This document shows positions 48,091 to 58,191 of a stretch of 64,000 bases of DNA, in pieces; position 1 is the stretch's first letter; the number at the start of each line of letters is the position of its first letter. The stretch lies in the sequence record NC_042013.1; one strand, written 5' to 3'. The notes beneath the pieces were generated by a model. That model did no database searches. It was not told the origin of the DNA and was given only the letters and a program-made list of their open reading frames with translations. The translations under genes were made by a program, and so were the position numbers.

Positions 48091-48924
48091 TTATAGGTGC
48101 CAATCATCCATTGCACGTGCATGTGACGGGCGATGCCCATCTCTCATCAACAATTCGTCTCGAATAAGCTGATTTTTCTTTTCCTCGTGCAAAATTCGAA
48201 GAAATGAGTTTTTCATCGTTGACGTATAATAAGCAAACGGGTTTTGACTTTTGCTTTCTTCGAATTTCAAACCAGCGTGTGAAAGTTGAATAAGAGCTTG
48301 TGCTTGCATTTCTTCAAGGTAGCTATAACCTCTCCAGTTTGGTTTCTGTCCATACTTGTCAACAAGTTTAAGATACATCGCACCCAAACGATCAGTTGTA
48401 CGCCCGTGTGTTACACAAAATTCACCATTCTCTAATGCATTTCGCCAATGCGATCTACCGACCTCACGCAGCACCAGTTCATTTGCATCAAAATCTTCGG
48501 TGTTTTCAATGTCAGTTTCGATAACATAATGCTTGTATGGAGCGAAATTTAGTGTATGATGGAAATCCTTTTCCTTTTTGGGATTGCCACGAAGTTCGTG
48601 TTCCTCGAGGCGAGGAATATGTTCATATGTCATAATACGAACGACCATACCATTAATCGGTATCGTTTTAGGATCGGTTGCCTCAAAGTCTGGAATGACT
48701 TTAACTTTGTGGGTTTTCTTATATTCCTCGCGTATTTTACGATCAAGACGCATAGCCTTGGTTACGCGAGTTGCATTGATGAGTTCTGTGGTTAATAACG
48801 ACCTGTCTGCAATGATTATATCATAATTTGCATATTGCGGTTCGGTGTAGTATGAATACGTGTTCTTGCTTAGATGAATCTCTTTGAGCAATTCACGGTT
48901 GGATAGAAAATTTACTTTTGCCAT
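48091..48924 (-). CDS. gp55: late-transcription sigma factor
   Basis: NWRGYSY.EEM, KF...KSQNPFAYYT...F.R.L.EEKK; upstream of 47-46 as in T4. Confidence 0.9.
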   Translation of the reverse strand: MAKVNFLSNRELLKEIHLSKNTYSYYTEPQYANYDIIIADRSLLTTELINATRVTKAMRLDRKIREEYKKTHKVKVIPDFEATDPKTIPINGMVVRIMTYEHIPRLEEHELRGNPKKEKDFHHTLNFAPYKHYVIETDIENTEDFDANELVLREVGRSHWRNALENGEFCVTHGRTTDRLGAMYLKLVDKYGQKPNWRGYSYLEEMQAQALIQLSHAGLKFEESKSQNPFAYYTSTMKNSFLRILHEEKKNQLIRDELLMRDGHRPSHARAMDDWHL

Positions 48925-49009
48925 TGGTAGTTCCTAAAAATCTGTTTACATTTTTAATATAAACATTTTTAACTAAAATTGCAATTAAATTAGTAGTTAA
49001 TTTGTCAAC

Positions 49010-49015
49010 TAAATA
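49010..49015 (+). promoter_or_regulatory. late promoter core TAAATA
   Basis: Heads the baseplate operon. Confidence 0.6.
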
Positions 49016-49031
49016 TTTGAAAGGACAAAAT

Positions 49032-49586
49032 ATGGATATCGTTATAGGTTCTGGACGTTTTAATCCTCCTACTGATGGTCATTACAAATTGTTCAAAATG
49101 ATTGAAAACACAGCTATATCTGACGGTGTGCGCGGTGAAGTATTTATAGTTGACGGTATAGGAAGTTCACAAGATGTTGGTAAAAATCCATTATCAATAT
49201 CTGAAAGGCAAAAAATCATTAAGAGATGGGTTCCATCTTTGCGGGTTGATTTTGTAAATTCTGCATATGATTTATTCGATGTTTTAGACGTTCAAAATAA
49301 GAATGTTACTAAATGGTTTATCGGAAAAGATCGTGAAAAAAGTTACAAAAGTCTTTTAAAGCAAATGAATTCCATGCATATAGAATTGATGATTTTGGAA
49401 AGAACCGATGAAGATGTTTCAGCAACCAAAGCTCGTCAATTCGCAATTGAAGGTGACATTGAACAGTTTTGTAAAATGATGCCTACTATAAATACCCTCG
49501 AAGATAACTTGTCAGTTATTAACCTTATTCGGGGTAAAAACAACTTATGTCATATGACCTTAAAACATTTACCATTGTTGAAGTAG
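49032..49586 (+). CDS. cytidylyltransferase-like (HIGH) nucleotidyltransferase
   Basis: GRFNPPTDGH, KNPLS, VSATKAR. Confidence 0.85.
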   Translation: MDIVIGSGRFNPPTDGHYKLFKMIENTAISDGVRGEVFIVDGIGSSQDVGKNPLSISERQKIIKRWVPSLRVDFVNSAYDLFDVLDVQNKNVTKWFIGKDREKSYKSLLKQMNSMHIELMILERTDEDVSATKARQFAIEGDIEQFCKMMPTINTLEDNLSVINLIRGKNNLCHMTLKHLPLLK

Positions 49587-50953
49587 GCGAGGATTCGTGG
49601 GGCATTCAATATACTGGTGGACCTCTTGAGCGTGGTTTTGCGTCATACGAAGACGCATTGTATACTGCCAATCAAGCAGCAATTAATTACCATTCCACCG
49701 ACACTGACGCGGTTCCGAGAAATCTTGATCAAGCTATTTTAAAAGCGCAAGAAGCTCGAGACAATTATATCACTTTCATTAGCGAAAATCCATCAGCTAC
49801 GGAAGAAGAAAAAAACGAGGAAATAGCAAAAATTGCTGCCGCCGAGGCATACGTAAGTGAATATCAATTACAACTTGATACAGCACGTTTACAAGCAACC
49901 GCGAAAGATAGTTTCGAAAATCAAAGCATCGATATTGCTATTGCAAATGCAGATGCTCGTCGCTCGGAATTGTCACAGGCGGCGGCGAACTTACGATCTT
50001 CAAGTGACGCTACTCCTGAACAAATACAGGCCGCAGACCAATCTGCGTTTGAGGCCGAGCTATATTACCAATCCCTTATAAAAGAAGAACAGTCCGCTAT
50101 AGATGTTGCTAACCCTACCGCCTTTGGTCTTGGTAGCTTGTTTTCAAGCGTTTCATCATCTATAGGAAATGTTTTTAATGGTGCAAATAATGCATTAGGA
50201 AATTTAACAAATCCGCTTAATGGATTGCTAAGCAATGTAACTTCCGGCCTTGGAAATCTATCTGGTGGTTTGGGTAGTGTTAATAGTAATTCGACAGGTG
50301 GAACCGCTGTTTCTGGAAATGTTGTATACGATAGTGCAACTGGAGGTATGACTAATACCGTTTCCGACCAACGTGTTAGACTTACTCCTAAACCGTCACA
50401 ACGTGGAATGTTGTCTGGTGTTCTGGCTCCATTGGCTACAACGTCTGGTTTGGTATTTCCTTATACTCCTACTATTACTTACCAAGCGGGTGTCGCATAT
50501 AATAAAATCGATGTTGTTCACACGAACCAAGATTGGAACGTGTATAAAAACACCGAATCCATTGCCCTTGATATTAATGGCACTTTCACCGCACAGAATG
50601 AAACTGAAGCAGCATATTTTCTAGCGGCTATTCATTTCCTTCGTGCTTTGACCAAAATGCATTTTGGTGATAGTAGCGAAAACAAAGGTCTCCCACCACC
50701 GCAAGTTTTGTTGGATGGTTACGGGACACATATGTTCAATTCCCTATCTGTTATAGTTGTAAATTATAGCGTTGATCTTAATCCTAATGTTGATTACGTC
50801 GCGGTCAGGGGTGACGGTGGTACTTCGTGGGTTCCTGCTGTTGCTGATTTAAGAGTTAACGTAATTGTTCAGCAGACACCTAAACAAGCAAGATCATTCA
50901 ATTGGGAAAGTTTCGCTACAGGCGAGTTAATGTCTAACGGAGGTTGGCTATGA
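49547..50953 (+). CDS. baseplate/tail-tube initiator (gp48/gp54-like, CIS tube N-term domain) with helical N-extension
   Basis: FPYTPTI, GTFTAQN, GLPPP..LL.GYG..MF. Confidence 0.7.
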   Translation: MSYDLKTFTIVEVGEDSWGIQYTGGPLERGFASYEDALYTANQAAINYHSTDTDAVPRNLDQAILKAQEARDNYITFISENPSATEEEKNEEIAKIAAAEAYVSEYQLQLDTARLQATAKDSFENQSIDIAIANADARRSELSQAAANLRSSSDATPEQIQAADQSAFEAELYYQSLIKEEQSAIDVANPTAFGLGSLFSSVSSSIGNVFNGANNALGNLTNPLNGLLSNVTSGLGNLSGGLGSVNSNSTGGTAVSGNVVYDSATGGMTNTVSDQRVRLTPKPSQRGMLSGVLAPLATTSGLVFPYTPTITYQAGVAYNKIDVVHTNQDWNVYKNTESIALDINGTFTAQNETEAAYFLAAIHFLRALTKMHFGDSSENKGLPPPQVLLDGYGTHMFNSLSVIVVNYSVDLNPNVDYVAVRGDGGTSWVPAVADLRVNVIVQQTPKQARSFNWESFATGELMSNGGWL

Positions 50954-51264
50954 CAGAAGTTAAATATCGTAGTGGTTCGCCATATGCGGCAACCCCGCAG
51001 ACGAGTTGGTATCTCGAGAATTTGGTGTTGCGCCAGATTGATCGTGCACCGTCTGATAAAAAAATAACATTACATCCAAAATATGAAAACCGTCCTTATA
51101 ATCTTTCATATGATTTATACGGAACAAGAGATTTTTGGTGGGTTTTTATGGTGCTAAATATCGATATCATTCGTGATCCAATTTACGATTTCAAAGCTGG
51201 AATCGAAATTTACGTTCCAACAAGGGAACGTGTATTAGGTAACACTGGACAGGCAAGAAATTAA
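50950..51264 (+). CDS. gp53: baseplate wedge subunit (gp53-like, LysM fold)
   Basis: RP..LSYDLYG...WWVF...N. Confidence 0.8.
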   Translation: MTEVKYRSGSPYAATPQTSWYLENLVLRQIDRAPSDKKITLHPKYENRPYNLSYDLYGTRDFWWVFMVLNIDIIRDPIYDFKAGIEIYVPTRERVLGNTGQARN

Positions 51265-53255
51265 TGGCAAGACTTTCATCATCACAAAAAGTTTTACTTA
51301 GTAACAATTATGTGGATATCGCACGACCTACGTCAGCAACTGGAGAACTAAGCGGAGCAGGTGCTGTGACGATGGGGCAAACTGCCGCTCAAGTAGCATC
51401 AGATATTGGTGCGGCAGAAAATCCTCTATCTGCAATAGAACAACCTTCATATCATTGGAAATTTTATGTAACTCCTGATATTTCGCGTTCAGGTGGTAGT
51501 ACGGAAGGTAACGTTTCTCAAAGTGTTATTCTTGGTTCTGTAAATGCTTCACAATGTATTATTACCGAGACAGGTGTAACTACGTTTAACCTTTTCGATA
51601 TGGAACTTGACACTATAACAGGTCCAAACTTCTTATCAAGAAATGCGGGTGGTCAAAAATTTACATTTAAAATTTCAGAGCCATATGGATGTACGTTGCC
51701 AGATAAAATGTATCTTGCTGCGAAGTCTGTAGGCGTTCGTAACTTTATGAAATGTCCTTATCATTTAAGTGTTGACTTTTTAGGTTATGATCCAGTGTCA
51801 GGCGCTCCGGTTAGACCGATTGAAAAATCGTGGGTTTGGAGAATCATGATTACCAAACTTACTACTAAATTTGATGAAACCGGATCGATCCATACATTTG
51901 AAGCAATTGGTTATAATGAACTTGGAAACCAAGATCAGTTCAGTTTGGTAGACGTTCCAATGAACGTTGATATTGCCAATGAAACAGGTAAAGTCGGTGA
52001 TATCTTAAAGAAACTGCAAGATAAGATCAATGAAAACATTGCAAAACGTTCTAACGTAAAAGGCGGTGGAACTGTACCATATAAGATCGTTATTAAAGAT
52101 GAGCCTTATGACGCATCCGTTGGTGCTTCAGTTTCATCACCATTCGAACATAAAATTATTCGTAATGAAAAATTCAAAGATTCATCTCGTAACCAAGAAA
52201 AAATGCAAATTTCACGTGGTACTGATATCGCTAAAATCATCGACTATTTGATGGGAAAAAGCGAAGATGCTACGAAAATGATCAACCCTGCAAATGACGC
52301 GGAAAAAATGGATGCGGCGGCGAAACCACAATCTGCTATCCATAGAGTTGATTGTGAGGTTACAAATGACAATTTCGACCTTAAAACAAATGAATACATT
52401 AGAACTATCACGTTTACCGTCCGTGGAACAGTTAACGTTCGCGCTGTAGGTTCCGCTAAAATTGAATCTGATGCTGCGGCTAATGGTGGTGCAGATAAAT
52501 TACAATACGCGCTATCCAATCTTCTGTTAAAAAAGCAGTATGATTATTTGTTTACTGGTACAAACACAGAGGTTATAAACTTAGACATAAACTTTAATTT
52601 CATGTTTAACGTTGCGGCTTCAATGTATGACGGTCATATTTTCTCTGATATGGCTTCCGGTGGTAGAGAACACGACGAAGTTCATTTCCCACGCCAAACA
52701 GAGAATACCAACTTTATTCCTCGTGATGACGGTACAGTTGTTGGAGGTATGGGTTTTAGTCCCGGCAACGGTTACGCTGAAGATTTGGAATTTTCCAACT
52801 CCCTATTGCCAATGAGCTTTATGCAGGATGGTAAAGACCCTCGTTATAATATCGCTCCAAGCGTTGAAAGTACCAACCTACGTAGTGGTTCGGTATACGC
52901 GATGATTCTAAATCAGCTTTATGGGACGTTTGACGGAAACTTGCAAAACATCGAACTTGAAATTCGCGGAGACCCTTATTGGCTTGGGCTAACAAATACA
53001 GAAAGCCCAAGTTCTAAAAGTTCTGAAATAGTTCCTAACTTTATAAATGGCGAGCATATGTTCCTTCTGAAGTTTTTCATACCTCAGGGTATCGATGATG
53101 AAGGACAACCGATTCTTCGCTTAACAGATATGTATAGTGGATTTTATGCGGTTATGCGTGTTGTTAGTAAATTTAGCGGCGGAAAGTTTACACAAACACT
53201 TATTAGTACAAGAATACCTGTTATGTCCGTTACTAAATTACTTGGTGGTCAGTAA
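51264..53255 (+). CDS. baseplate hub protein (gp27-like)
   Basis: Position between gp53 and gp5; LEIRGDPYWL, FSGGKFTQ.L. Confidence 0.7.
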   Translation: MARLSSSQKVLLSNNYVDIARPTSATGELSGAGAVTMGQTAAQVASDIGAAENPLSAIEQPSYHWKFYVTPDISRSGGSTEGNVSQSVILGSVNASQCIITETGVTTFNLFDMELDTITGPNFLSRNAGGQKFTFKISEPYGCTLPDKMYLAAKSVGVRNFMKCPYHLSVDFLGYDPVSGAPVRPIEKSWVWRIMITKLTTKFDETGSIHTFEAIGYNELGNQDQFSLVDVPMNVDIANETGKVGDILKKLQDKINENIAKRSNVKGGGTVPYKIVIKDEPYDASVGASVSSPFEHKIIRNEKFKDSSRNQEKMQISRGTDIAKIIDYLMGKSEDATKMINPANDAEKMDAAAKPQSAIHRVDCEVTNDNFDLKTNEYIRTITFTVRGTVNVRAVGSAKIESDAAANGGADKLQYALSNLLLKKQYDYLFTGTNTEVINLDINFNFMFNVAASMYDGHIFSDMASGGREHDEVHFPRQTENTNFIPRDDGTVVGGMGFSPGNGYAEDLEFSNSLLPMSFMQDGKDPRYNIAPSVESTNLRSGSVYAMILNQLYGTFDGNLQNIELEIRGDPYWLGLTNTESPSSKSSEIVPNFINGEHMFLLKFFIPQGIDDEGQPILRLTDMYSGFYAVMRVVSKFSGGKFTQTLISTRIPVMSVTKLLGGQ

Positions 53256-53323
53256 TTAATTAATTGTATTTAAACAGCTTAAAATGTTAATATTTAATAT
53301 TACAAAAAAGTCAAGGAATAATT

Positions 53324-55921
53324 ATGGCTAGAGCAACAGACGGTTATAATCGTTCAGTGGACACGCCATCTGGTTATACACAGCAACCAGATGGCCGTGC
53401 AACATTGTTTGATCAAACATATATCGGCTTCGTTAGAAAATCAGAAGATGAAATTCGTATGGGGCGACTTAAAGTATGGATTCCCGATCTTGGCGGCGAC
53501 TCTGACGTTGAGGACACTTGGTACACAGTTAACTATTGTTCACCATTTGCTGGCGCAACACCTATTGCAAAATATGATAATCAAGACCCTAGTCGTCATC
53601 CAGACGGAAATAAACGCGATGGAAAGACTATGGAGGATACGCAAATATCATACGGTTTCTGGATGGTTCCACCTGACATGGATACCGAAGTTATTGTTAT
53701 GTTTATTAATGGCGATCCAAACAAAGGTATTTGGATTGGATGTTTATATAAACAGTATATGAATCATATGGTTCCCGGTATTCCCCGTAACAATTCATTC
53801 CAAGACGGGGAAAGTGGTGAATTACCTCCTGTTGTTGAATACAATAAACGTTCTGATATCGGTAATAACGATGACCCTACTCGTGCGCGTTATGATCCTC
53901 TTCATTACGGTCTTAAAATGCAAGGTCTTTATACCGACCCACAGCGCGGTCCAGCATCATCCGGTGCTCGACGTGAATCGCCATCAAAAGTTTTTGGGTT
54001 CCTAACTCCTGATGGTTCTCAAATTTATGCGGACGATCTTGAATGTAACCAGTTCATTCGTCTTAGAACAAAATCTGGAGTGCAGGTACTCATTCACGAA
54101 ACCGATGGTTACATATATATGAACTCCAAGAGAGGTAACTCGTGGTTACAGATTTCTGACGATGGGATTGATATGTACTCAACCAAGGGTGTAAACTTAC
54201 ACTCAACAGGTGGTTACAATTTCCATACCGATAAAGATTACAATCTTCATATTGGTGGTAACTTCAACGTTTTTACCGAAGGTGACTTTAAGGTTTCTAC
54301 TGTTGGCAACGTCGACATGCTATCTGGTAAAGATATGCGTCAGGACGTTGGTGGTGCATTCCATAGCACTATCAAAGCTAACAGAAACATTAAGATTGAG
54401 GGTTCCGATAATTTAAAGATTACTGGTAATCAATCAATACATTCGGACAAAGTTGTTACTTTTAGCGGTGGTCAGTTGATTGTTTTGAAAGCTCCATCTA
54501 TCACACAAAATAATTCAGGTGATGCTAATCAACCAGAAGAACCAGCAACAGCGGAAGGTAAAGAACCAACCGATACTCCTGATCGTGAGTTGAAAGAAAC
54601 ATATCCCGGCGATGAACGCAAATCTATTACCGAGCGTATGCCTACTCACGAGCCTTTTGATCAACATGCAGACCAACCACCAGTAAACAAGGATGATCCT
54701 TCCGGTGCAGGAGCAACACAAGGCGATACCCCTGCAAGTGAAAAAGAAATTGCTGAACAAGAAAAAGAGAATGCAAATAAAACAGACGCGAGTGGTGGAA
54801 AAACGCAGGCTGCTCCAAACGAAAAGGGAACCAAACCTATGCTTGACCTTATCGGTAAAACCGAGGGGACCGACAAAGGTGACGGATATAATGAAACCCT
54901 TGCATATGGTAAGTTTACCGGTGGCGATGTTAATCTAACAGGTATGACACTTGGAGAAATTGACCGTTTGCAAACTAATATGCTTAATCATCCTGATAAT
55001 AACTGGAATTCGTCTGCGGTAGGTCGCTATCAGATTGTAAGAACAACTCTTCGTGGACTTAAGTCTGAAATGGGATATTCTGATAGTACTCTGTTTACTC
55101 CTGCGGTTCAAGATGCAATGGCAAACAAACTTCTTGAGCGCCGTGGTCTTAATAGCTGGCAAAATGGAAAAATTTCAGACGCACAGTTTATGAATAACTT
55201 GAGTAAGGAATGGGCATCACTTCCTAAATCAAACGGTAGAGGTACATACGCAGGTCAAGGTGTCGGGGCATCTGCTGGAACGGTGGTTCAGACATTGGAT
55301 CAAATGCGTGCTAACCCAGTATCAGTACAGTTCGAAGATGAACAATATGACACCGGGTTAGAAGATGCTGAACGCTCATCATATATGAACGTTGGTAAAG
55401 TAATTAACGGTACATCGGTTGGTACTTGCGTACTTACAGATAATTCCGGTACACTTATAACCAATGCGCACGTAGTCGGTGTTAAATCAACTATTGGAAC
55501 TACTTATGAAGTTCAAATTGGTAGGTCTTCACGAAGAGCTACTTTGATTCGAATTAATGCTGAGAAAGACATCGCGCAATTAAGACTCGTTGAATATAGC
55601 GATCTAGTTCCTATTACCACGGGCGGTGAAATGAAAGCCAATGATACCATATACAGTTTTGGATATGCTCTTGGTAAAACGTTTACTCGTATTGAAGCAG
55701 TATATACGGGTGAAAATAACCGTAAAAGTAAATATTCAGACCCCGGTGGGGAGTCAGATGGCCTTATTGTTTCAGGTCTTAGTGTTATGAAAACAATAGG
55801 CGTAGCTGGTTTGAAACCCGGTATGTCAGGTGGTCCTGTTCTTGATAAGTATGGTCGTCTAATAGGTATTAATGCCGCGACTATACCGGGACAAGCTGAA
55901 GCAAGATTTATACCATTATAA
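53324..55921 (+). CDS. gp5: baseplate central spike gp5-like: OB fold, beta-helix, lysozyme, trypsin-like protease
   Basis: GRLKVWIP/SPFAG/PPD OB fold; beta repeats; EG..GYN..AVGRYQ..EWASLP muramidase; TNAH/DIA/GMSGG triad. Confidence 0.9.
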   Translation: MARATDGYNRSVDTPSGYTQQPDGRATLFDQTYIGFVRKSEDEIRMGRLKVWIPDLGGDSDVEDTWYTVNYCSPFAGATPIAKYDNQDPSRHPDGNKRDGKTMEDTQISYGFWMVPPDMDTEVIVMFINGDPNKGIWIGCLYKQYMNHMVPGIPRNNSFQDGESGELPPVVEYNKRSDIGNNDDPTRARYDPLHYGLKMQGLYTDPQRGPASSGARRESPSKVFGFLTPDGSQIYADDLECNQFIRLRTKSGVQVLIHETDGYIYMNSKRGNSWLQISDDGIDMYSTKGVNLHSTGGYNFHTDKDYNLHIGGNFNVFTEGDFKVSTVGNVDMLSGKDMRQDVGGAFHSTIKANRNIKIEGSDNLKITGNQSIHSDKVVTFSGGQLIVLKAPSITQNNSGDANQPEEPATAEGKEPTDTPDRELKETYPGDERKSITERMPTHEPFDQHADQPPVNKDDPSGAGATQGDTPASEKEIAEQEKENANKTDASGGKTQAAPNEKGTKPMLDLIGKTEGTDKGDGYNETLAYGKFTGGDVNLTGMTLGEIDRLQTNMLNHPDNNWNSSAVGRYQIVRTTLRGLKSEMGYSDSTLFTPAVQDAMANKLLERRGLNSWQNGKISDAQFMNNLSKEWASLPKSNGRGTYAGQGVGASAGTVVQTLDQMRANPVSVQFEDEQYDTGLEDAERSSYMNVGKVINGTSVGTCVLTDNSGTLITNAHVVGVKSTIGTTYEVQIGRSSRRATLIRINAEKDIAQLRLVEYSDLVPITTGGEMKANDTIYSFGYALGKTFTRIEAVYTGENNRKSKYSDPGGESDGLIVSGLSVMKTIGVAGLKPGMSGGPVLDKYGRLIGINAATIPGQAEARFIPL

Positions 55922-55931
55922 GGATTATGAC

Positions 55932-56132
55932 ATGACAAATAAAGAAAAATTAGTATCAGACCTTATAGCAAGTAAGATTAACATTACGTCTTTCGAGTAC
56001 GAAATGGGTAAATTAGGCGTGCACGTTGTTAAGCCACAGGAGGCAGCGGTAGCTGCTTTCTATACGGATGAACGAAGATATTTTCCAACGGTAAACGAAT
56101 TTGATGTTGTTGTTGGGGGGTATTTCGGATGA
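55932..56132 (+). CDS. hypothetical protein
   Basis: SD AAGGA; between gp5 and tail lysozyme. Confidence 0.55.
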   Translation: MTNKEKLVSDLIASKINITSFEYEMGKLGVHVVKPQEAAVAAFYTDERRYFPTVNEFDVVVGGYFG

Positions 56133-56746
56133 GTTGCGATCCAAAAATGACGGGTGCTGGAAAATCATCCGGCAACTCATCTGGCTCTGGTGGTTCAGGT
56201 GGTTCAGAATCGAACGGAAGTGGCGGAAATAATGGATCAGGTGAAGGCGGTTCTAATGAGAAGTTAGCTAATGATACAACTGAGGCTAATATTAAGTTTA
56301 ATAAACAACGCGTAGACGAAATTACAGCAGAGATGCGAAAAAAAGGTTATAACGATATACAAATTGCGGCTGCACTTGGTCATTGGAAAAATGAATCTGG
56401 ATTTAGACTTGATGCTCTTAATAGAGGCGACGGTCGTGATGGTTCAGATTCCATTGGTCTTGCACAATGGAATAGTTCACGCGCTGCTGGACTTAAAAAT
56501 TACGCTGCTCAAAATGGATTACCCGTTAATTCTGTTGCAGCACAAGTTGGATGGTTCGATTATGAAATGAAAAATACTGAAAAAGGCGCTGGATATGCTT
56601 TTAAAAATGCGACTACAGTTGCTGAAGCAAGTTGGGCAATGAACAAGTATGAAAGATTTCAAGGTTATAACTCAACCACAAGTTCACAAACGATTAGTCG
56701 CTTGCAAAATTCGAATACCTTCTACTCGTATATAACCAAAAAATAG
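56129..56746 (+). CDS. phage tail lysozyme (Phage_lysozyme2-like) with N-terminal Gly/Ser linker
   Basis: AALGHWKNESG, SIGLAQW, AQVGWFDYEM. Confidence 0.8.
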   Translation: MSCDPKMTGAGKSSGNSSGSGGSGGSESNGSGGNNGSGEGGSNEKLANDTTEANIKFNKQRVDEITAEMRKKGYNDIQIAAALGHWKNESGFRLDALNRGDGRDGSDSIGLAQWNSSRAAGLKNYAAQNGLPVNSVAAQVGWFDYEMKNTEKGAGYAFKNATTVAEASWAMNKYERFQGYNSTTSSQTISRLQNSNTFYSYITKK

Positions 56747-56769
56747 CATAGCTATGTCAAATTTTAATC

Positions 56770-56798
56770 TTGACGTTGCTGTTTCAACCTGATACATT
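56770..56798 (+). promoter_or_regulatory. sigma70 promoter of candidate sRNA
   Basis: TTGACG-17-TACATT. Confidence 0.6.
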
Positions 56799-56885
56799 GG
56801 TGTCATCGATACTGAATACAACCGACTGCTTGATAGTTCGTGTGCTTAACCGGTTTGCTTCAACCGCGTATTCAGTATCGACACC
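56799..56885 (+). ncRNA. structured sRNA candidate with repeated UGCUU loops
   Basis: Perfect 14-bp closing helix 56806-56819/56868-56881, two inner hairpins. Confidence 0.65.
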
Positions 56886-56890
56886 CCCTC

Positions 56891-56942
56891 TTGACTCCAT
56901 ATACCAACCGAGATAATATCCCATATGAAGGAGATACATATG
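56891..56942 (+). promoter_or_regulatory. promoter plus start-codon hairpin
   Basis: TTGACT-17-TAATAT; CATATG-AAGGAGATA-CATATG. Confidence 0.6.
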
Positions 56943-57224
56943 TGGTATTTTAAACATGACGCAATTCCGAATACATTTATTGATCGTTATTTTTCAATAA
57001 GGGTTGATTCAATGTGGTGGTCTTATGAACACAACAAATTCGTAGAAACTATTGGGGACGTTGGTAAAAAAGGTGCTGCTTCATCAAAAAGCATTGGATC
57101 ATTCAAAGCCTTCAAGAGATTTTTGAGAAAGCATTCGTATCTTAAAGGAAAAACGGTATTGTTAGAATCGAGGTGGTCACATAATAACGTAGTTGCAAAA
57201 TGGATTGATCATGAAAATAGGTGA
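56940..57224 (+). CDS. hypothetical protein
   Basis: SD AAGGAG. Confidence 0.65.
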   Translation: MWYFKHDAIPNTFIDRYFSIRVDSMWWSYEHNKFVETIGDVGKKGAASSKSIGSFKAFKRFLRKHSYLKGKTVLLESRWSHNNVVAKWIDHENR

Positions 57225-57498
57225 AATGTATAAACACAGAAATGCTGTTATTCAAATTCACAGCATTCAAGAGGAAACTGTCAGCATTAAATTATTCTCC
57301 AATGAAATATATCTGGATACCGTAGTAAAGTCTGAGTTACTAGAAGACATAAATGATGGCTTTTATAAGCCTATGTCATCAACCGAAATCAAGTATTTCA
57401 TTGATGATAAAGTCGATTTTTACGAAAATGCTATTACCAAAAATTTCAAAAATTATAATAGCATCATAGAGACACTGAAATTATCAAGAAACCAGTGA
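57211..57498 (+). CDS. hypothetical protein
   Basis: Operon packing. Confidence 0.55.
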   Translation: MKIGEMYKHRNAVIQIHSIQEETVSIKLFSNEIYLDTVVKSELLEDINDGFYKPMSSTEIKYFIDDKVDFYENAITKNFKNYNSIIETLKLSRNQ

Positions 57499-58191
57499 TT
57501 TCATCAAATAATTATCCAACTCTTGATGTGTTGGGAATACAACCCCGTACATTCTTTGTAAGTTATAAATTTTATCGTTATTTATTACAGAGATAGGTTC
57601 AACTCGTAAAATTTTAAAGCTAGATCCTATCTGACCAACAGCATTAACATTCGGCCCTTTACACAAGTCCCACCAAGAACCCTGTGAATAAGTTATCACA
57701 TCATTTCCAGATGGAATTCCGTCGAGGATTTGAATTTTGTAAGGTTCATCTACAGTTGTGAAATATTCACGTAATTCGTCTCGATTGTTAACAAAACGTT
57801 TGAATTTAGCGTTACGTTCTACCAATTCTAACATCTTAGAGGTTACTTCATTTATACATATAAAGCCGTCATATTCAAAGTCATAGAAAAATTCAACATT
57901 TTCAGTGCAGCAATTTGCAGTTTTTAGGTCTGGATACAATAGCATAACGGCTTCAGACATAACTCGTGATGTTGAATTTCGCAAAGCTCTCGCAGCTATC
58001 GGATCATGTTTTGAGATATAGCGTATATGGGAATCTGATGTTATGGGGGTTGATAAATCAGACAATACGCCATTGATTTCGATGAGAATTATGTTCTCGT
58101 CAAAAATGTTCAAATGTTTAAGTATATCCTCGCCCGATGAATTGCGTGGATATGTAGTAATTGTACCGTTATCCAATGTCAACATTATCAT
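57484..58191 (-). CDS. stand-alone ThrRS N-terminal (TGS + editing) domain, catalytic His substituted
   Basis: FFYDF, YKIQILD, DLCKGP, LQRMYG align to ThrRS N1/N2; ends at TGA TAA where the catalytic core would begin. Confidence 0.85.
   Translation of the reverse strand: MIMLTLDNGTITTYPRNSSGEDILKHLNIFDENIILIEINGVLSDLSTPITSDSHIRYISKHDPIAARALRNSTSRVMSEAVMLLYPDLKTANCCTENVEFFYDFEYDGFICINEVTSKMLELVERNAKFKRFVNNRDELREYFTTVDEPYKIQILDGIPSGNDVITYSQGSWWDLCKGPNVNAVGQIGSSFKILRVEPISVINNDKIYNLQRMYGVVFPTHQELDNYLMKSLVS

Follow-up and report, generated by a model that had tools for sequence, protein, structure and literature searches.

The window analysed here is the final 64 kb (64,000 nucleotides) of the deposited genome of Agrobacterium phage Atu_ph07 (NC_042013.1), a jumbo myophage of 490,380 bp. 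The gene of interest is gp699, which encodes a baseplate central spike with a predicted lysozyme and a predicted HtrA-like serine protease behind its beta-helix. The gene is 100% identical to FDI40_gp699 at 479704-482301 of the record. Its open reading frame starts with ATG, runs uninterrupted for 865 codons and closes with a stop codon. An AT-rich spacer of 68 nucleotides (nt) precedes the gene, and an AAGGA ribosome-binding site lies 7 nt 5' of the start. The product is named 'baseplate hub subunit and tail lysozyme' in RefSeq, 'hypothetical protein' in GenBank and 'Gp5/Type VI secretion system Vgr protein OB-fold domain-containing protein' in UniProt (A0A223W0P2). The whole protein matches phrog_430, 'baseplate hub subunit and tail lysozyme', in PHROGs (E = 2e-214). 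A tblastn search of the Atu_ph07 record for a second gp5-like gene matched one place only, and gp686, annotated 'baseplate hub', is a different protein of 280 amino acids (aa). The features of the locus are listed in Table 1.

Table 1. Features of gp699 and its neighbours, in window coordinates (pLDDT, predicted local distance difference test)
Feature	Position	Strand	Evidence or remark
gp696, gp697 and gp698, upstream baseplate genes	49547-53255	+	Tightly packed block; PHROG and Pfam matches
gp697, gp25/gp53-like wedge	50950-51264	+	
gp698, 663 aa	51264-53255	+	
gp699, whole gene, 865 aa and stop	53324-55921	+	Baseplate central spike with predicted C-terminal enzyme cargo
gp5/VgrG-type OB-fold region, aa 1-150	53324-53773	+	Phage_base_V, invariant columns, pLDDT
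Conserved middle region and beta-helix, aa 151-400	53774-54523	+	Profile, PDB and Foldseek matches
Conserved post-helix segment, aa 401-448	54524-54667	+	Probable end of core spike; putative metal-binding tip
Acidic disordered linker, aa 449-502	54668-54829	+	Charge, pLDDT
Lambda-lysozyme-like domain, aa 503-660	54830-55303	+	1am7/3d3d, phrog_90; predicted catalytic Glu514 at 54863-54865
Flexible inter-domain spacer, aa 661-689	55304-55390	+	pLDDT <50 at aa 665-682
HtrA-like chymotrypsin-fold serine protease domain, aa 690-865	55391-55918	+	Trypsin_2, triad alignment, Foldseek
gp700, 66 aa	55932-56132	+	Conserved
gp701, 205 aa	56129-56746	+	Phage_lysozyme2 PF18013, E = 1e-22

Domain architecture of the spike

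The results presented here identify gp699 as the gp5/VgrG-type central spike of the Atu_ph07 baseplate. The identification is based on the Pfam OB fold, the phrog_430 match, the family profile, the Foldseek match to 7aef_q and the baseplate genes next to it; OB fold, beta-helical needle and baseplate context together place the protein among the gp5/VgrG-type spikes. Phage_base_V, the Pfam OB-fold family, was found at residues 110-142 (E = 1.5e-9; 38.5 bits, cut-off 23.8) and is present in all 120 surveyed homologues. Many columns of the OB-fold region are invariant among 121 homologues, and pLDDT is ~90 from residue 30 on. The match to Gp5_trimer_C is weak (residues 335-373, 14.7 bits, under the Pfam cut-off). 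In a search of PDB sequences, residues 213-326 matched the contractile-injection-system spikes 7b5h_AJ and 7aef_q, and a profile of the 121 homologues matched injection-system spikes, VgrG, phiKZ gp164 and the T4 gp5 beta-helix in the PDB. With Foldseek, the N-terminal half aligned over 311 columns (E = 4.6e-11) with 7aef_q, a spike from the contractile injection system of Algoriphagus.

The original prediction had described a gp5 spike carrying enzymes behind its beta-helix, in the manner of evolved VgrG proteins. Pfam, PDB and Foldseek comparisons agree with this architecture, and the OB fold, beta-helix and acidic linker each lie where they had been placed. Like evolved VgrG, gp699 has predicted effector domains behind a beta-helix on the spike tip, and the family profile matches the VgrG structures 9jg8 and 8gra. 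Unlike evolved VgrG, it is phage-encoded and lacks a fused gp27-like N-terminal half, with the OB fold starting from about residue 30. The NCBIfam model VI_Rhs_Vgr matched residues 115-145 only (17 bits versus a cut-off of 186), which, with the phage context, places gp699 outside VgrG (TssI).

The core of the spike probably ends with the segment that follows the helix. Residues H442, E443, P444 and H448 (nt 54646-54667) are each kept in at least 90% of the 121 homologues, and the full-length structural model contains a structured hairpin at residues 416-434. Spikes without cargo terminate just past this conserved segment, at 440 aa in locus L006 and at 477 aa in Pseudomonas phage PAC2. Because cargo-less spikes end there, the part of gp699 beyond approximately residue 450 appears to be an add-on. 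The H442/H448 segment may form a metal-binding tip, similar in idea to the histidine cage of P2 gpV, in which an HxH motif holds iron at the apex (bioRxiv 10.1101/2023.02.25.529910). gp699 resembles the P2 gpV and phi92 gp138 apices in having conserved His at the distal end of the core. It differs from the P2 gpV apex in that five residues, not one, separate the His pair and the chain runs on past it, and no homology of the gp699 tip to the P2 gpV or phi92 gp138 apex was detected.

Behind the core lies a tether followed by a predicted lysozyme. The net charge across residues 400-503 is -13, and pLDDT falls below 50 at residues 461-500, as it does in the later spacer, indicating that both stretches are disordered. 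Residues 503-641 match phage lambda lysozyme (1am7/3d3d, E = 5e-6) with Glu514 opposite chain Glu19, and the domain matches the phrog_90 endolysins (E = 1e-22). It is 48% identical to the baseplate hub lysozyme of phiM12, its fold also matches a rhizobiophage 'SAR endolysin transglycosylase', and Glu514 is invariant in the six closest sequences. The Pfam Phage_lysozyme model did not report the domain. The predicted muramidase thus stands as an enzyme domain, and the 1am7 match with Glu514 on Glu19 assigns it to the lambda-lysozyme type, not the T4 lysozyme type. Lambda-type lysozymes act as lytic transglycosylases. In the hubs of rhizobiophages phiM12 and phiN3 a lambda-type lysozyme is likewise C-terminal, but those proteins lack a serine protease.

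T4 gp5 carries its T4-type lysozyme between the OB fold and the helix. No lysozyme was found in that interval of gp699 (residues 150-240), so gp699 is not a T4 gp5 in the strict sense. The two proteins share the OB fold with a beta-helix spike, which is trimeric in T4 gp5, a place in the baseplate cluster and a wall-degrading enzyme, predicted in the case of gp699. The predicted enzyme of gp699, in contrast, is of the lambda type and is positioned behind the helix on a disordered tether, followed by the serine protease.

The last domain of gp699 resembles a chymotrypsin-fold protease. Trypsin_2 was found at residues 700-849 (E = 6e-17; 63 bits, cut-off 27.6, Pfam), and in a phmmer search of PDB sequences residues 687-857 matched Deg1, HtrA and DegQ with the three triad motifs in register. 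These are TNAH (residues 713-716; His716 at nt 55469-55471), KDIA (residues 748-751; Asp749 at nt 55568-55570) and GMSGG (residues 833-837; Ser835 at nt 55826-55828), which lie exactly where they had been predicted. Two AlphaFold models were used, one of residues 495-865 from 11 sequences and one of the full-length protein from 121 sequences; the protein of the Sinorhizobium jumbo phage Phosso was left out of the alignment. Mean pLDDT was 80-81 in both models, in which both enzyme domains are confidently folded. The best Foldseek matches in the PDB were Deg1, Deg8, Rv3671c, Rv0983, DegS, DegQ and DegP (E ~1e-14), with a target TM-score of up to 0.73. The His-Asp-Ser triad and the oxyanion-hole loop are apparently complete, and the double beta-barrel and the His-Asp-Ser order are those of peptidase family S1.

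Compared with the HtrA group (HtrA, DegP, DegS, Deg1 and MarP (Rv3671c); subfamily S1C), gp699 shares the chymotrypsin fold, the order of the triad and the motifs, and the group provides its best sequence and fold matches. Unlike these enzymes, gp699 lacks a PDZ domain, a signal peptide and a membrane anchor, and is fused to a phage spike. No PDZ domain was found with Pfam, and the protease domain forms the end of the protein. Against the NCBIfam family cut-offs of 250-470 the protease scored 34 bits. The DegP/HtrA models among them gave 30-34 bits against cut-offs of 416-470, which leaves gp699 outside the HtrA/DegP subfamily, and the HtrA and MarP matches, being sub-threshold, allow no family assignment.

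The proposed cargo slot in related spikes

Homologues of the spike core carry a variety of domains at the same position. A search with residues 1-450 of gp699 returned 571 proteins at E <= 1e-10. Domains in the best 120 of these were counted by hand from precomputed Pfam lists; the counts overlap, as four proteins have two domains. A recognised domain follows the core in 105 of the 120. Peptidase_M23 is the most frequent (46), followed by SLT (26), Hydrolase_2 (SleB-like; 13), Trypsin_2 (10, one of them the protein that also has M23), Phage_lysozyme2 (7, one of them with the only CHAP domain in addition), GH24 lysozyme (3), the 3D domain (2) and PF21277 (1); the other 15 have no recognised domain behind the core. 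The slot behind the helix is, judging from these domain assignments, a swappable place for wall-degrading enzymes, with the predicted protease as a rare occupant. Related jumbo-phage spikes with M23, SLT, SleB-like, GH24 or CHAP domains are like gp699 in their core and in the position of their cargo, but lack the serine protease.

The Trypsin_2 carriers are exactly the 10 of these 120 proteins whose cores are nearest to that of gp699 (59-98% identical). Their confinement to the most core-similar proteins suggests that Trypsin_2 was acquired once in the spike clade. Within the group the middle module changes and the protease is always last. A lambda-type lysozyme precedes it in Atu_ph07, the metagenomic relatives P0001-P0004, Phosso, P0024 and P0025, and an M23 domain precedes it in P0023; in P0020-P0022 it stands alone on a Ser/Gly linker. 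Linker length and sequence differ among the relatives, from acidic in Atu_ph07 to Ser/Gly in P0020-P0022. The Phosso linker includes a run of ~180 residues that is nearly pure Gly/Ser.

No close donor of the protease was found outside the clade. In an exhaustive HMMER search of 1.84 billion representatives with residues 680-865, four sequences matched at E <= 1e-30 and nine at E <= 1e-10. The four are the clade spikes P0002, P0020 and P0023 together with P0136, a fragment that runs off the start of a 1-kb contig. Past E <= 1e-10 the matches grade continuously into generic HtrA/Trypsin_2 proteins (2406 at E <= 1e-3), which are ~30-40% identical.

The spike-protease fusion is found in other phage genomes. 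Phosso encodes a collinear orthologue of 1044 aa (L002:3421-6552), with 65% identity to gp699 over residues 8-448 and 42% over residues 505-865. The proteins of P0001-P0004 (857-870 aa) are 68-96% identical to gp699 and have an identical layout, and the fusion is also present in P0020-P0025, giving at least 10 metagenomic relatives in all. The 90% cluster of P0001 has six members on contigs of up to 497,955 bp, and near-complete metagenomic genomes of 492-498 kb contain the fusion.

Each domain of gp699 is under strong purifying selection. The Atu_ph07 gene and the P0001 gene (L009:4001-6595) are 83% identical in nucleotides and 96% in amino acids, and their synonymous sites are near saturation (proportion of synonymous differences, pS, 0.61-0.72; overall 0.66). 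The ratio of nonsynonymous to synonymous proportions (pN/pS), from which this selection is deduced, is lowest in the OB fold and helix (0.019), higher in the lysozyme (0.039) and highest in the protease (0.061). Such constraint is unusually strong for a pair of phage structural genes.

Neighbouring genes

The order of the genes upstream of gp699 is also found in L003, L006, L009 and Phosso. gp698 is a virion protein (seven peptides by mass spectrometry) that lies directly 5' of the spike gene every time. It had no match in Pfam or NCBIfam, and its position suggests that it is the gp27-like hub partner.

Downstream, gp700 is present in six loci with 38-86% identity and 13 invariant positions, and always lies right after the spike gene or a stand-alone protease-fold gene. 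No PAAR or other significant family match was found for it in PHROG, Pfam or NCBIfam, and it is not among the virion proteins detected by mass spectrometry. One possibility is that gp700 assists the spike or its cargo as a chaperone or an adaptor. gp701 is annotated as 'tail length tape measure protein' though it has only 205 aa. Its likely role is that of a second wall hydrolase associated with the virion rather than that of a tape measure. A homologue at L003:10359-11522 contains Peptidase_M15_3 in addition.

The T4-type late promoter TATAAATA is not enriched in the window, with 8 copies found and 8.6 expected. One copy of TATAAATA (49487-49494, + strand) lies 53 nt 5' of gp696, at the head of the gp696-gp701 block, and gp694, a gene for a T4 gp55-like late sigma factor, lies just 5' of the block. 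Scans of positions 48800-57600 for sigma-70 promoters and terminators gave no excess over shuffled sequence.

Possible roles of the protease domain

The C-terminal domains of gp699 may be spike-delivered, envelope-cutting cargo that opens the wall jointly, a reading whose chances we consider evenly balanced. Cargo directed at the envelope or cell wall is favoured because the slot in relatives carries M23, SLT, CHAP and GH24 domains. Purifying selection on every domain and a relative that has spike and protease fold as adjacent genes also speak for this reading. The spike core probably ends at about residue 450, and two folded enzyme domains lie behind it on the disordered acidic tether. The position behind the helix would be the cargo slot, in which related spikes appear to place one or two cell-wall hydrolases. 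Upon sheath contraction, the spike tip would take the tethered cargo across the outer membrane into the periplasm, where a glycan-cutting domain and a protease that cuts peptide bonds could jointly open the wall locally. Targets of the protease might be the peptides of peptidoglycan, but with an HtrA-like fold wall-embedded or wall-tethered proteins are more plausible. Candidates in Agrobacterium would be the peptidoglycan-linked outer-membrane beta-barrels; AopA1, AopA2 and AopB of A. tumefaciens are crosslinked to peptidoglycan from the outer membrane (PMC11527210). A non-catalytic trait of the fold, for instance an ability to bind peptides or to form trimers, must count as well, because a sister lineage retains the domain without catalytic residues.

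A more far-reaching proposal is tentative, and we lean against it. It holds that the chymotrypsin-fold serine protease is an unrecognised class of phage entry enzyme on the spike tip, which cuts wall peptides or the proteins by which the outer membrane is anchored to the wall, and that the sister lineage turned the domain, and sometimes the lysozyme, into non-catalytic binding modules. In the literature searched, no phage spike or VgrG was found described as having a trypsin-fold domain.

The original prediction, a virion-borne protease for self-maturation or for cutting an S-layer, outer-membrane or periplasmic defence protein at entry, is supported in part, and several observations weaken it. 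The protease predicted to be intact is so in Atu_ph07 and in nine of 14 protease domains overall (Atu_ph07, P0001-P0004 and P0020-P0023), but the other five have neither the nucleophile nor the general base. Four of these (Phosso, P0024, P0025 and the fragment P0136) carry Gln in place of His and Ala in place of Ser and retain Asp. The fifth, P0137, is a stand-alone Trypsin_2 gene of 184 aa in which all three catalytic residues have changed. The dead domains are not decaying faster than the live ones: the dead pair Phosso/P0024 has 60% protease identity at 78% core identity, and the live pair Atu_ph07/P0004 has 62% at 80%. Dead domains that are as conserved as live ones imply that catalysis is dispensable in part of the clade, and these sequences rule it out as a role that the domain plays throughout the clade. 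P0137 also adjoins a cargo-less spike, which weakens the case for a protease further. HtrA-type proteases are known for protein quality control and not as wall hydrolases. Lastly, reasoning from where the domain sits is indirect.

The published virion data do not list gp699 either. In the description of Atu_ph07, gp699 is a predicted lysozyme filed under lysis, with the protease domain unmentioned (PMC6102473). The protein had been predicted to be virion-borne, but it does not appear in the published table of 131 virion proteins identified by electrospray ionization tandem mass spectrometry, though gp696, gp697, gp698 and gp701 do, the last with 68.8% coverage (PMC6102473). It may have been missed, as a particle would hold only three copies of it and its helix would resist proteases; homology suggests its association with the virion. 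The same work lists gp329, encoded outside the window, as a virion protein named 'extracellular serine proteinase precursor' (139 kDa, three peptides; PMC6102473, Table S5). gp699 may not be the sole protease-like virion component of Atu_ph07.

The protease fold could be mainly a non-catalytic module, such as a binder of peptides or cell wall or a trimerising cap, and the triad of Atu_ph07 an ancestral leftover of little importance. We regard this as doubtful, though it draws on several features of the clade. The domains of Phosso, P0024, P0025, P0136 and P0137 are dead yet conserved, and the loop around the lost Ser is kept in dead domains. In P0024 and P0025 the lysozyme Glu is gone too, such that their entire cargo is apparently non-enzymatic yet retained. 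The P0137 gene lies directly 3' of the gene for a cargo-less spike of 440 aa and overlaps it by 4 nt; the locus (L006), seen in two sequencing runs or samples, is syntenic in all other respects. This split arrangement argues that the protease fold is tied functionally to the spike, and the death of P0137 that some members of the clade employ this fold non-catalytically. HtrA proteases are built from trimers, which would suit a trimeric spike. Against this role, His, Asp and Ser are kept in nine of nine sequences of the Atu_ph07, P0020 and P0023 lineages at protease identities down to 44-49%, the pN/pS of the protease is low, and on the P0020-P0022 spikes the protease is the only enzyme domain. 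Phosso, P0024 and P0025 also share a Cys pair just past the conserved His segment.

The protease could instead act in maturation, cutting its own linker or other baseplate proteins during assembly, with the cargo released or removed. Processing of gp5 is part of T4 assembly, the C-terminal chaperone domains of certain tail fibres and spikes cleave themselves off, the long exposed linkers of gp699 would be accessible to a protease, and gp699 was undetected in virions. Yet this is unlikely. Linker sequence and length are not conserved (acidic, Ser/Gly or a Gly/Ser run), which implies that there is no conserved cleavage site, and relatives with dead triads would be incapable of self-processing but have the same layout. 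The gap in the mass spectrometry data covers all of gp699, N-terminal peptides included, and is therefore silent on cleavage. The strong conservation of the lysozyme, with its catalytic Glu, points to a cargo that is used, not discarded.

Less probable still is an injected effector that acts on host proteins apart from wall penetration, such as periplasmic or membrane proteins of defence or stress response. Evolved VgrG spikes deliver diverse effectors, HtrA-like enzymes cleave proteins, and the tether would give reach to targets after penetration. All other recognised domains in the slot are, however, cell-wall hydrolases, no defence-related match was found, and dead variants persist. Finally, an artefact that joined two genes, through misassembly or a missed stop codon or frameshift, was considered and can be dismissed: one relative does have spike and protease fold as two genes, but the reading frame is uninterrupted in the deposited genome and the fusion recurs in Phosso, in P0001-P0004 and P0020-P0025 and in the 492-498 kb metagenomic genomes, which were assembled independently.

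The survey also bears on annotation. Some spikes called 'baseplate hub subunit and tail lysozyme' lack a lysozyme altogether. The 477-aa PAC2 spike (vB_Pa-PAC2, L010:2492-3925) is an example, as it has no room for a lysozyme domain, and its name was apparently carried over from T4 gp5.

Wall-degrading or toxic domains are known cargo of phage and type VI secretion spikes; a trypsin-fold protease in that position was not found in the literature searched. If spike-delivered envelope cutting is correct and the protease acts at entry, the set of virion-associated enzymes that degrade the envelope would grow, and alphaproteobacterial envelope proteins would be barriers that a phage must cut. The clade also forms a natural comparison set, in which the protease domain occurs alone, after a lysozyme, after M23, dead, and dead as a gene of its own. 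Such a set would permit the role of the domain to be studied by description alone.

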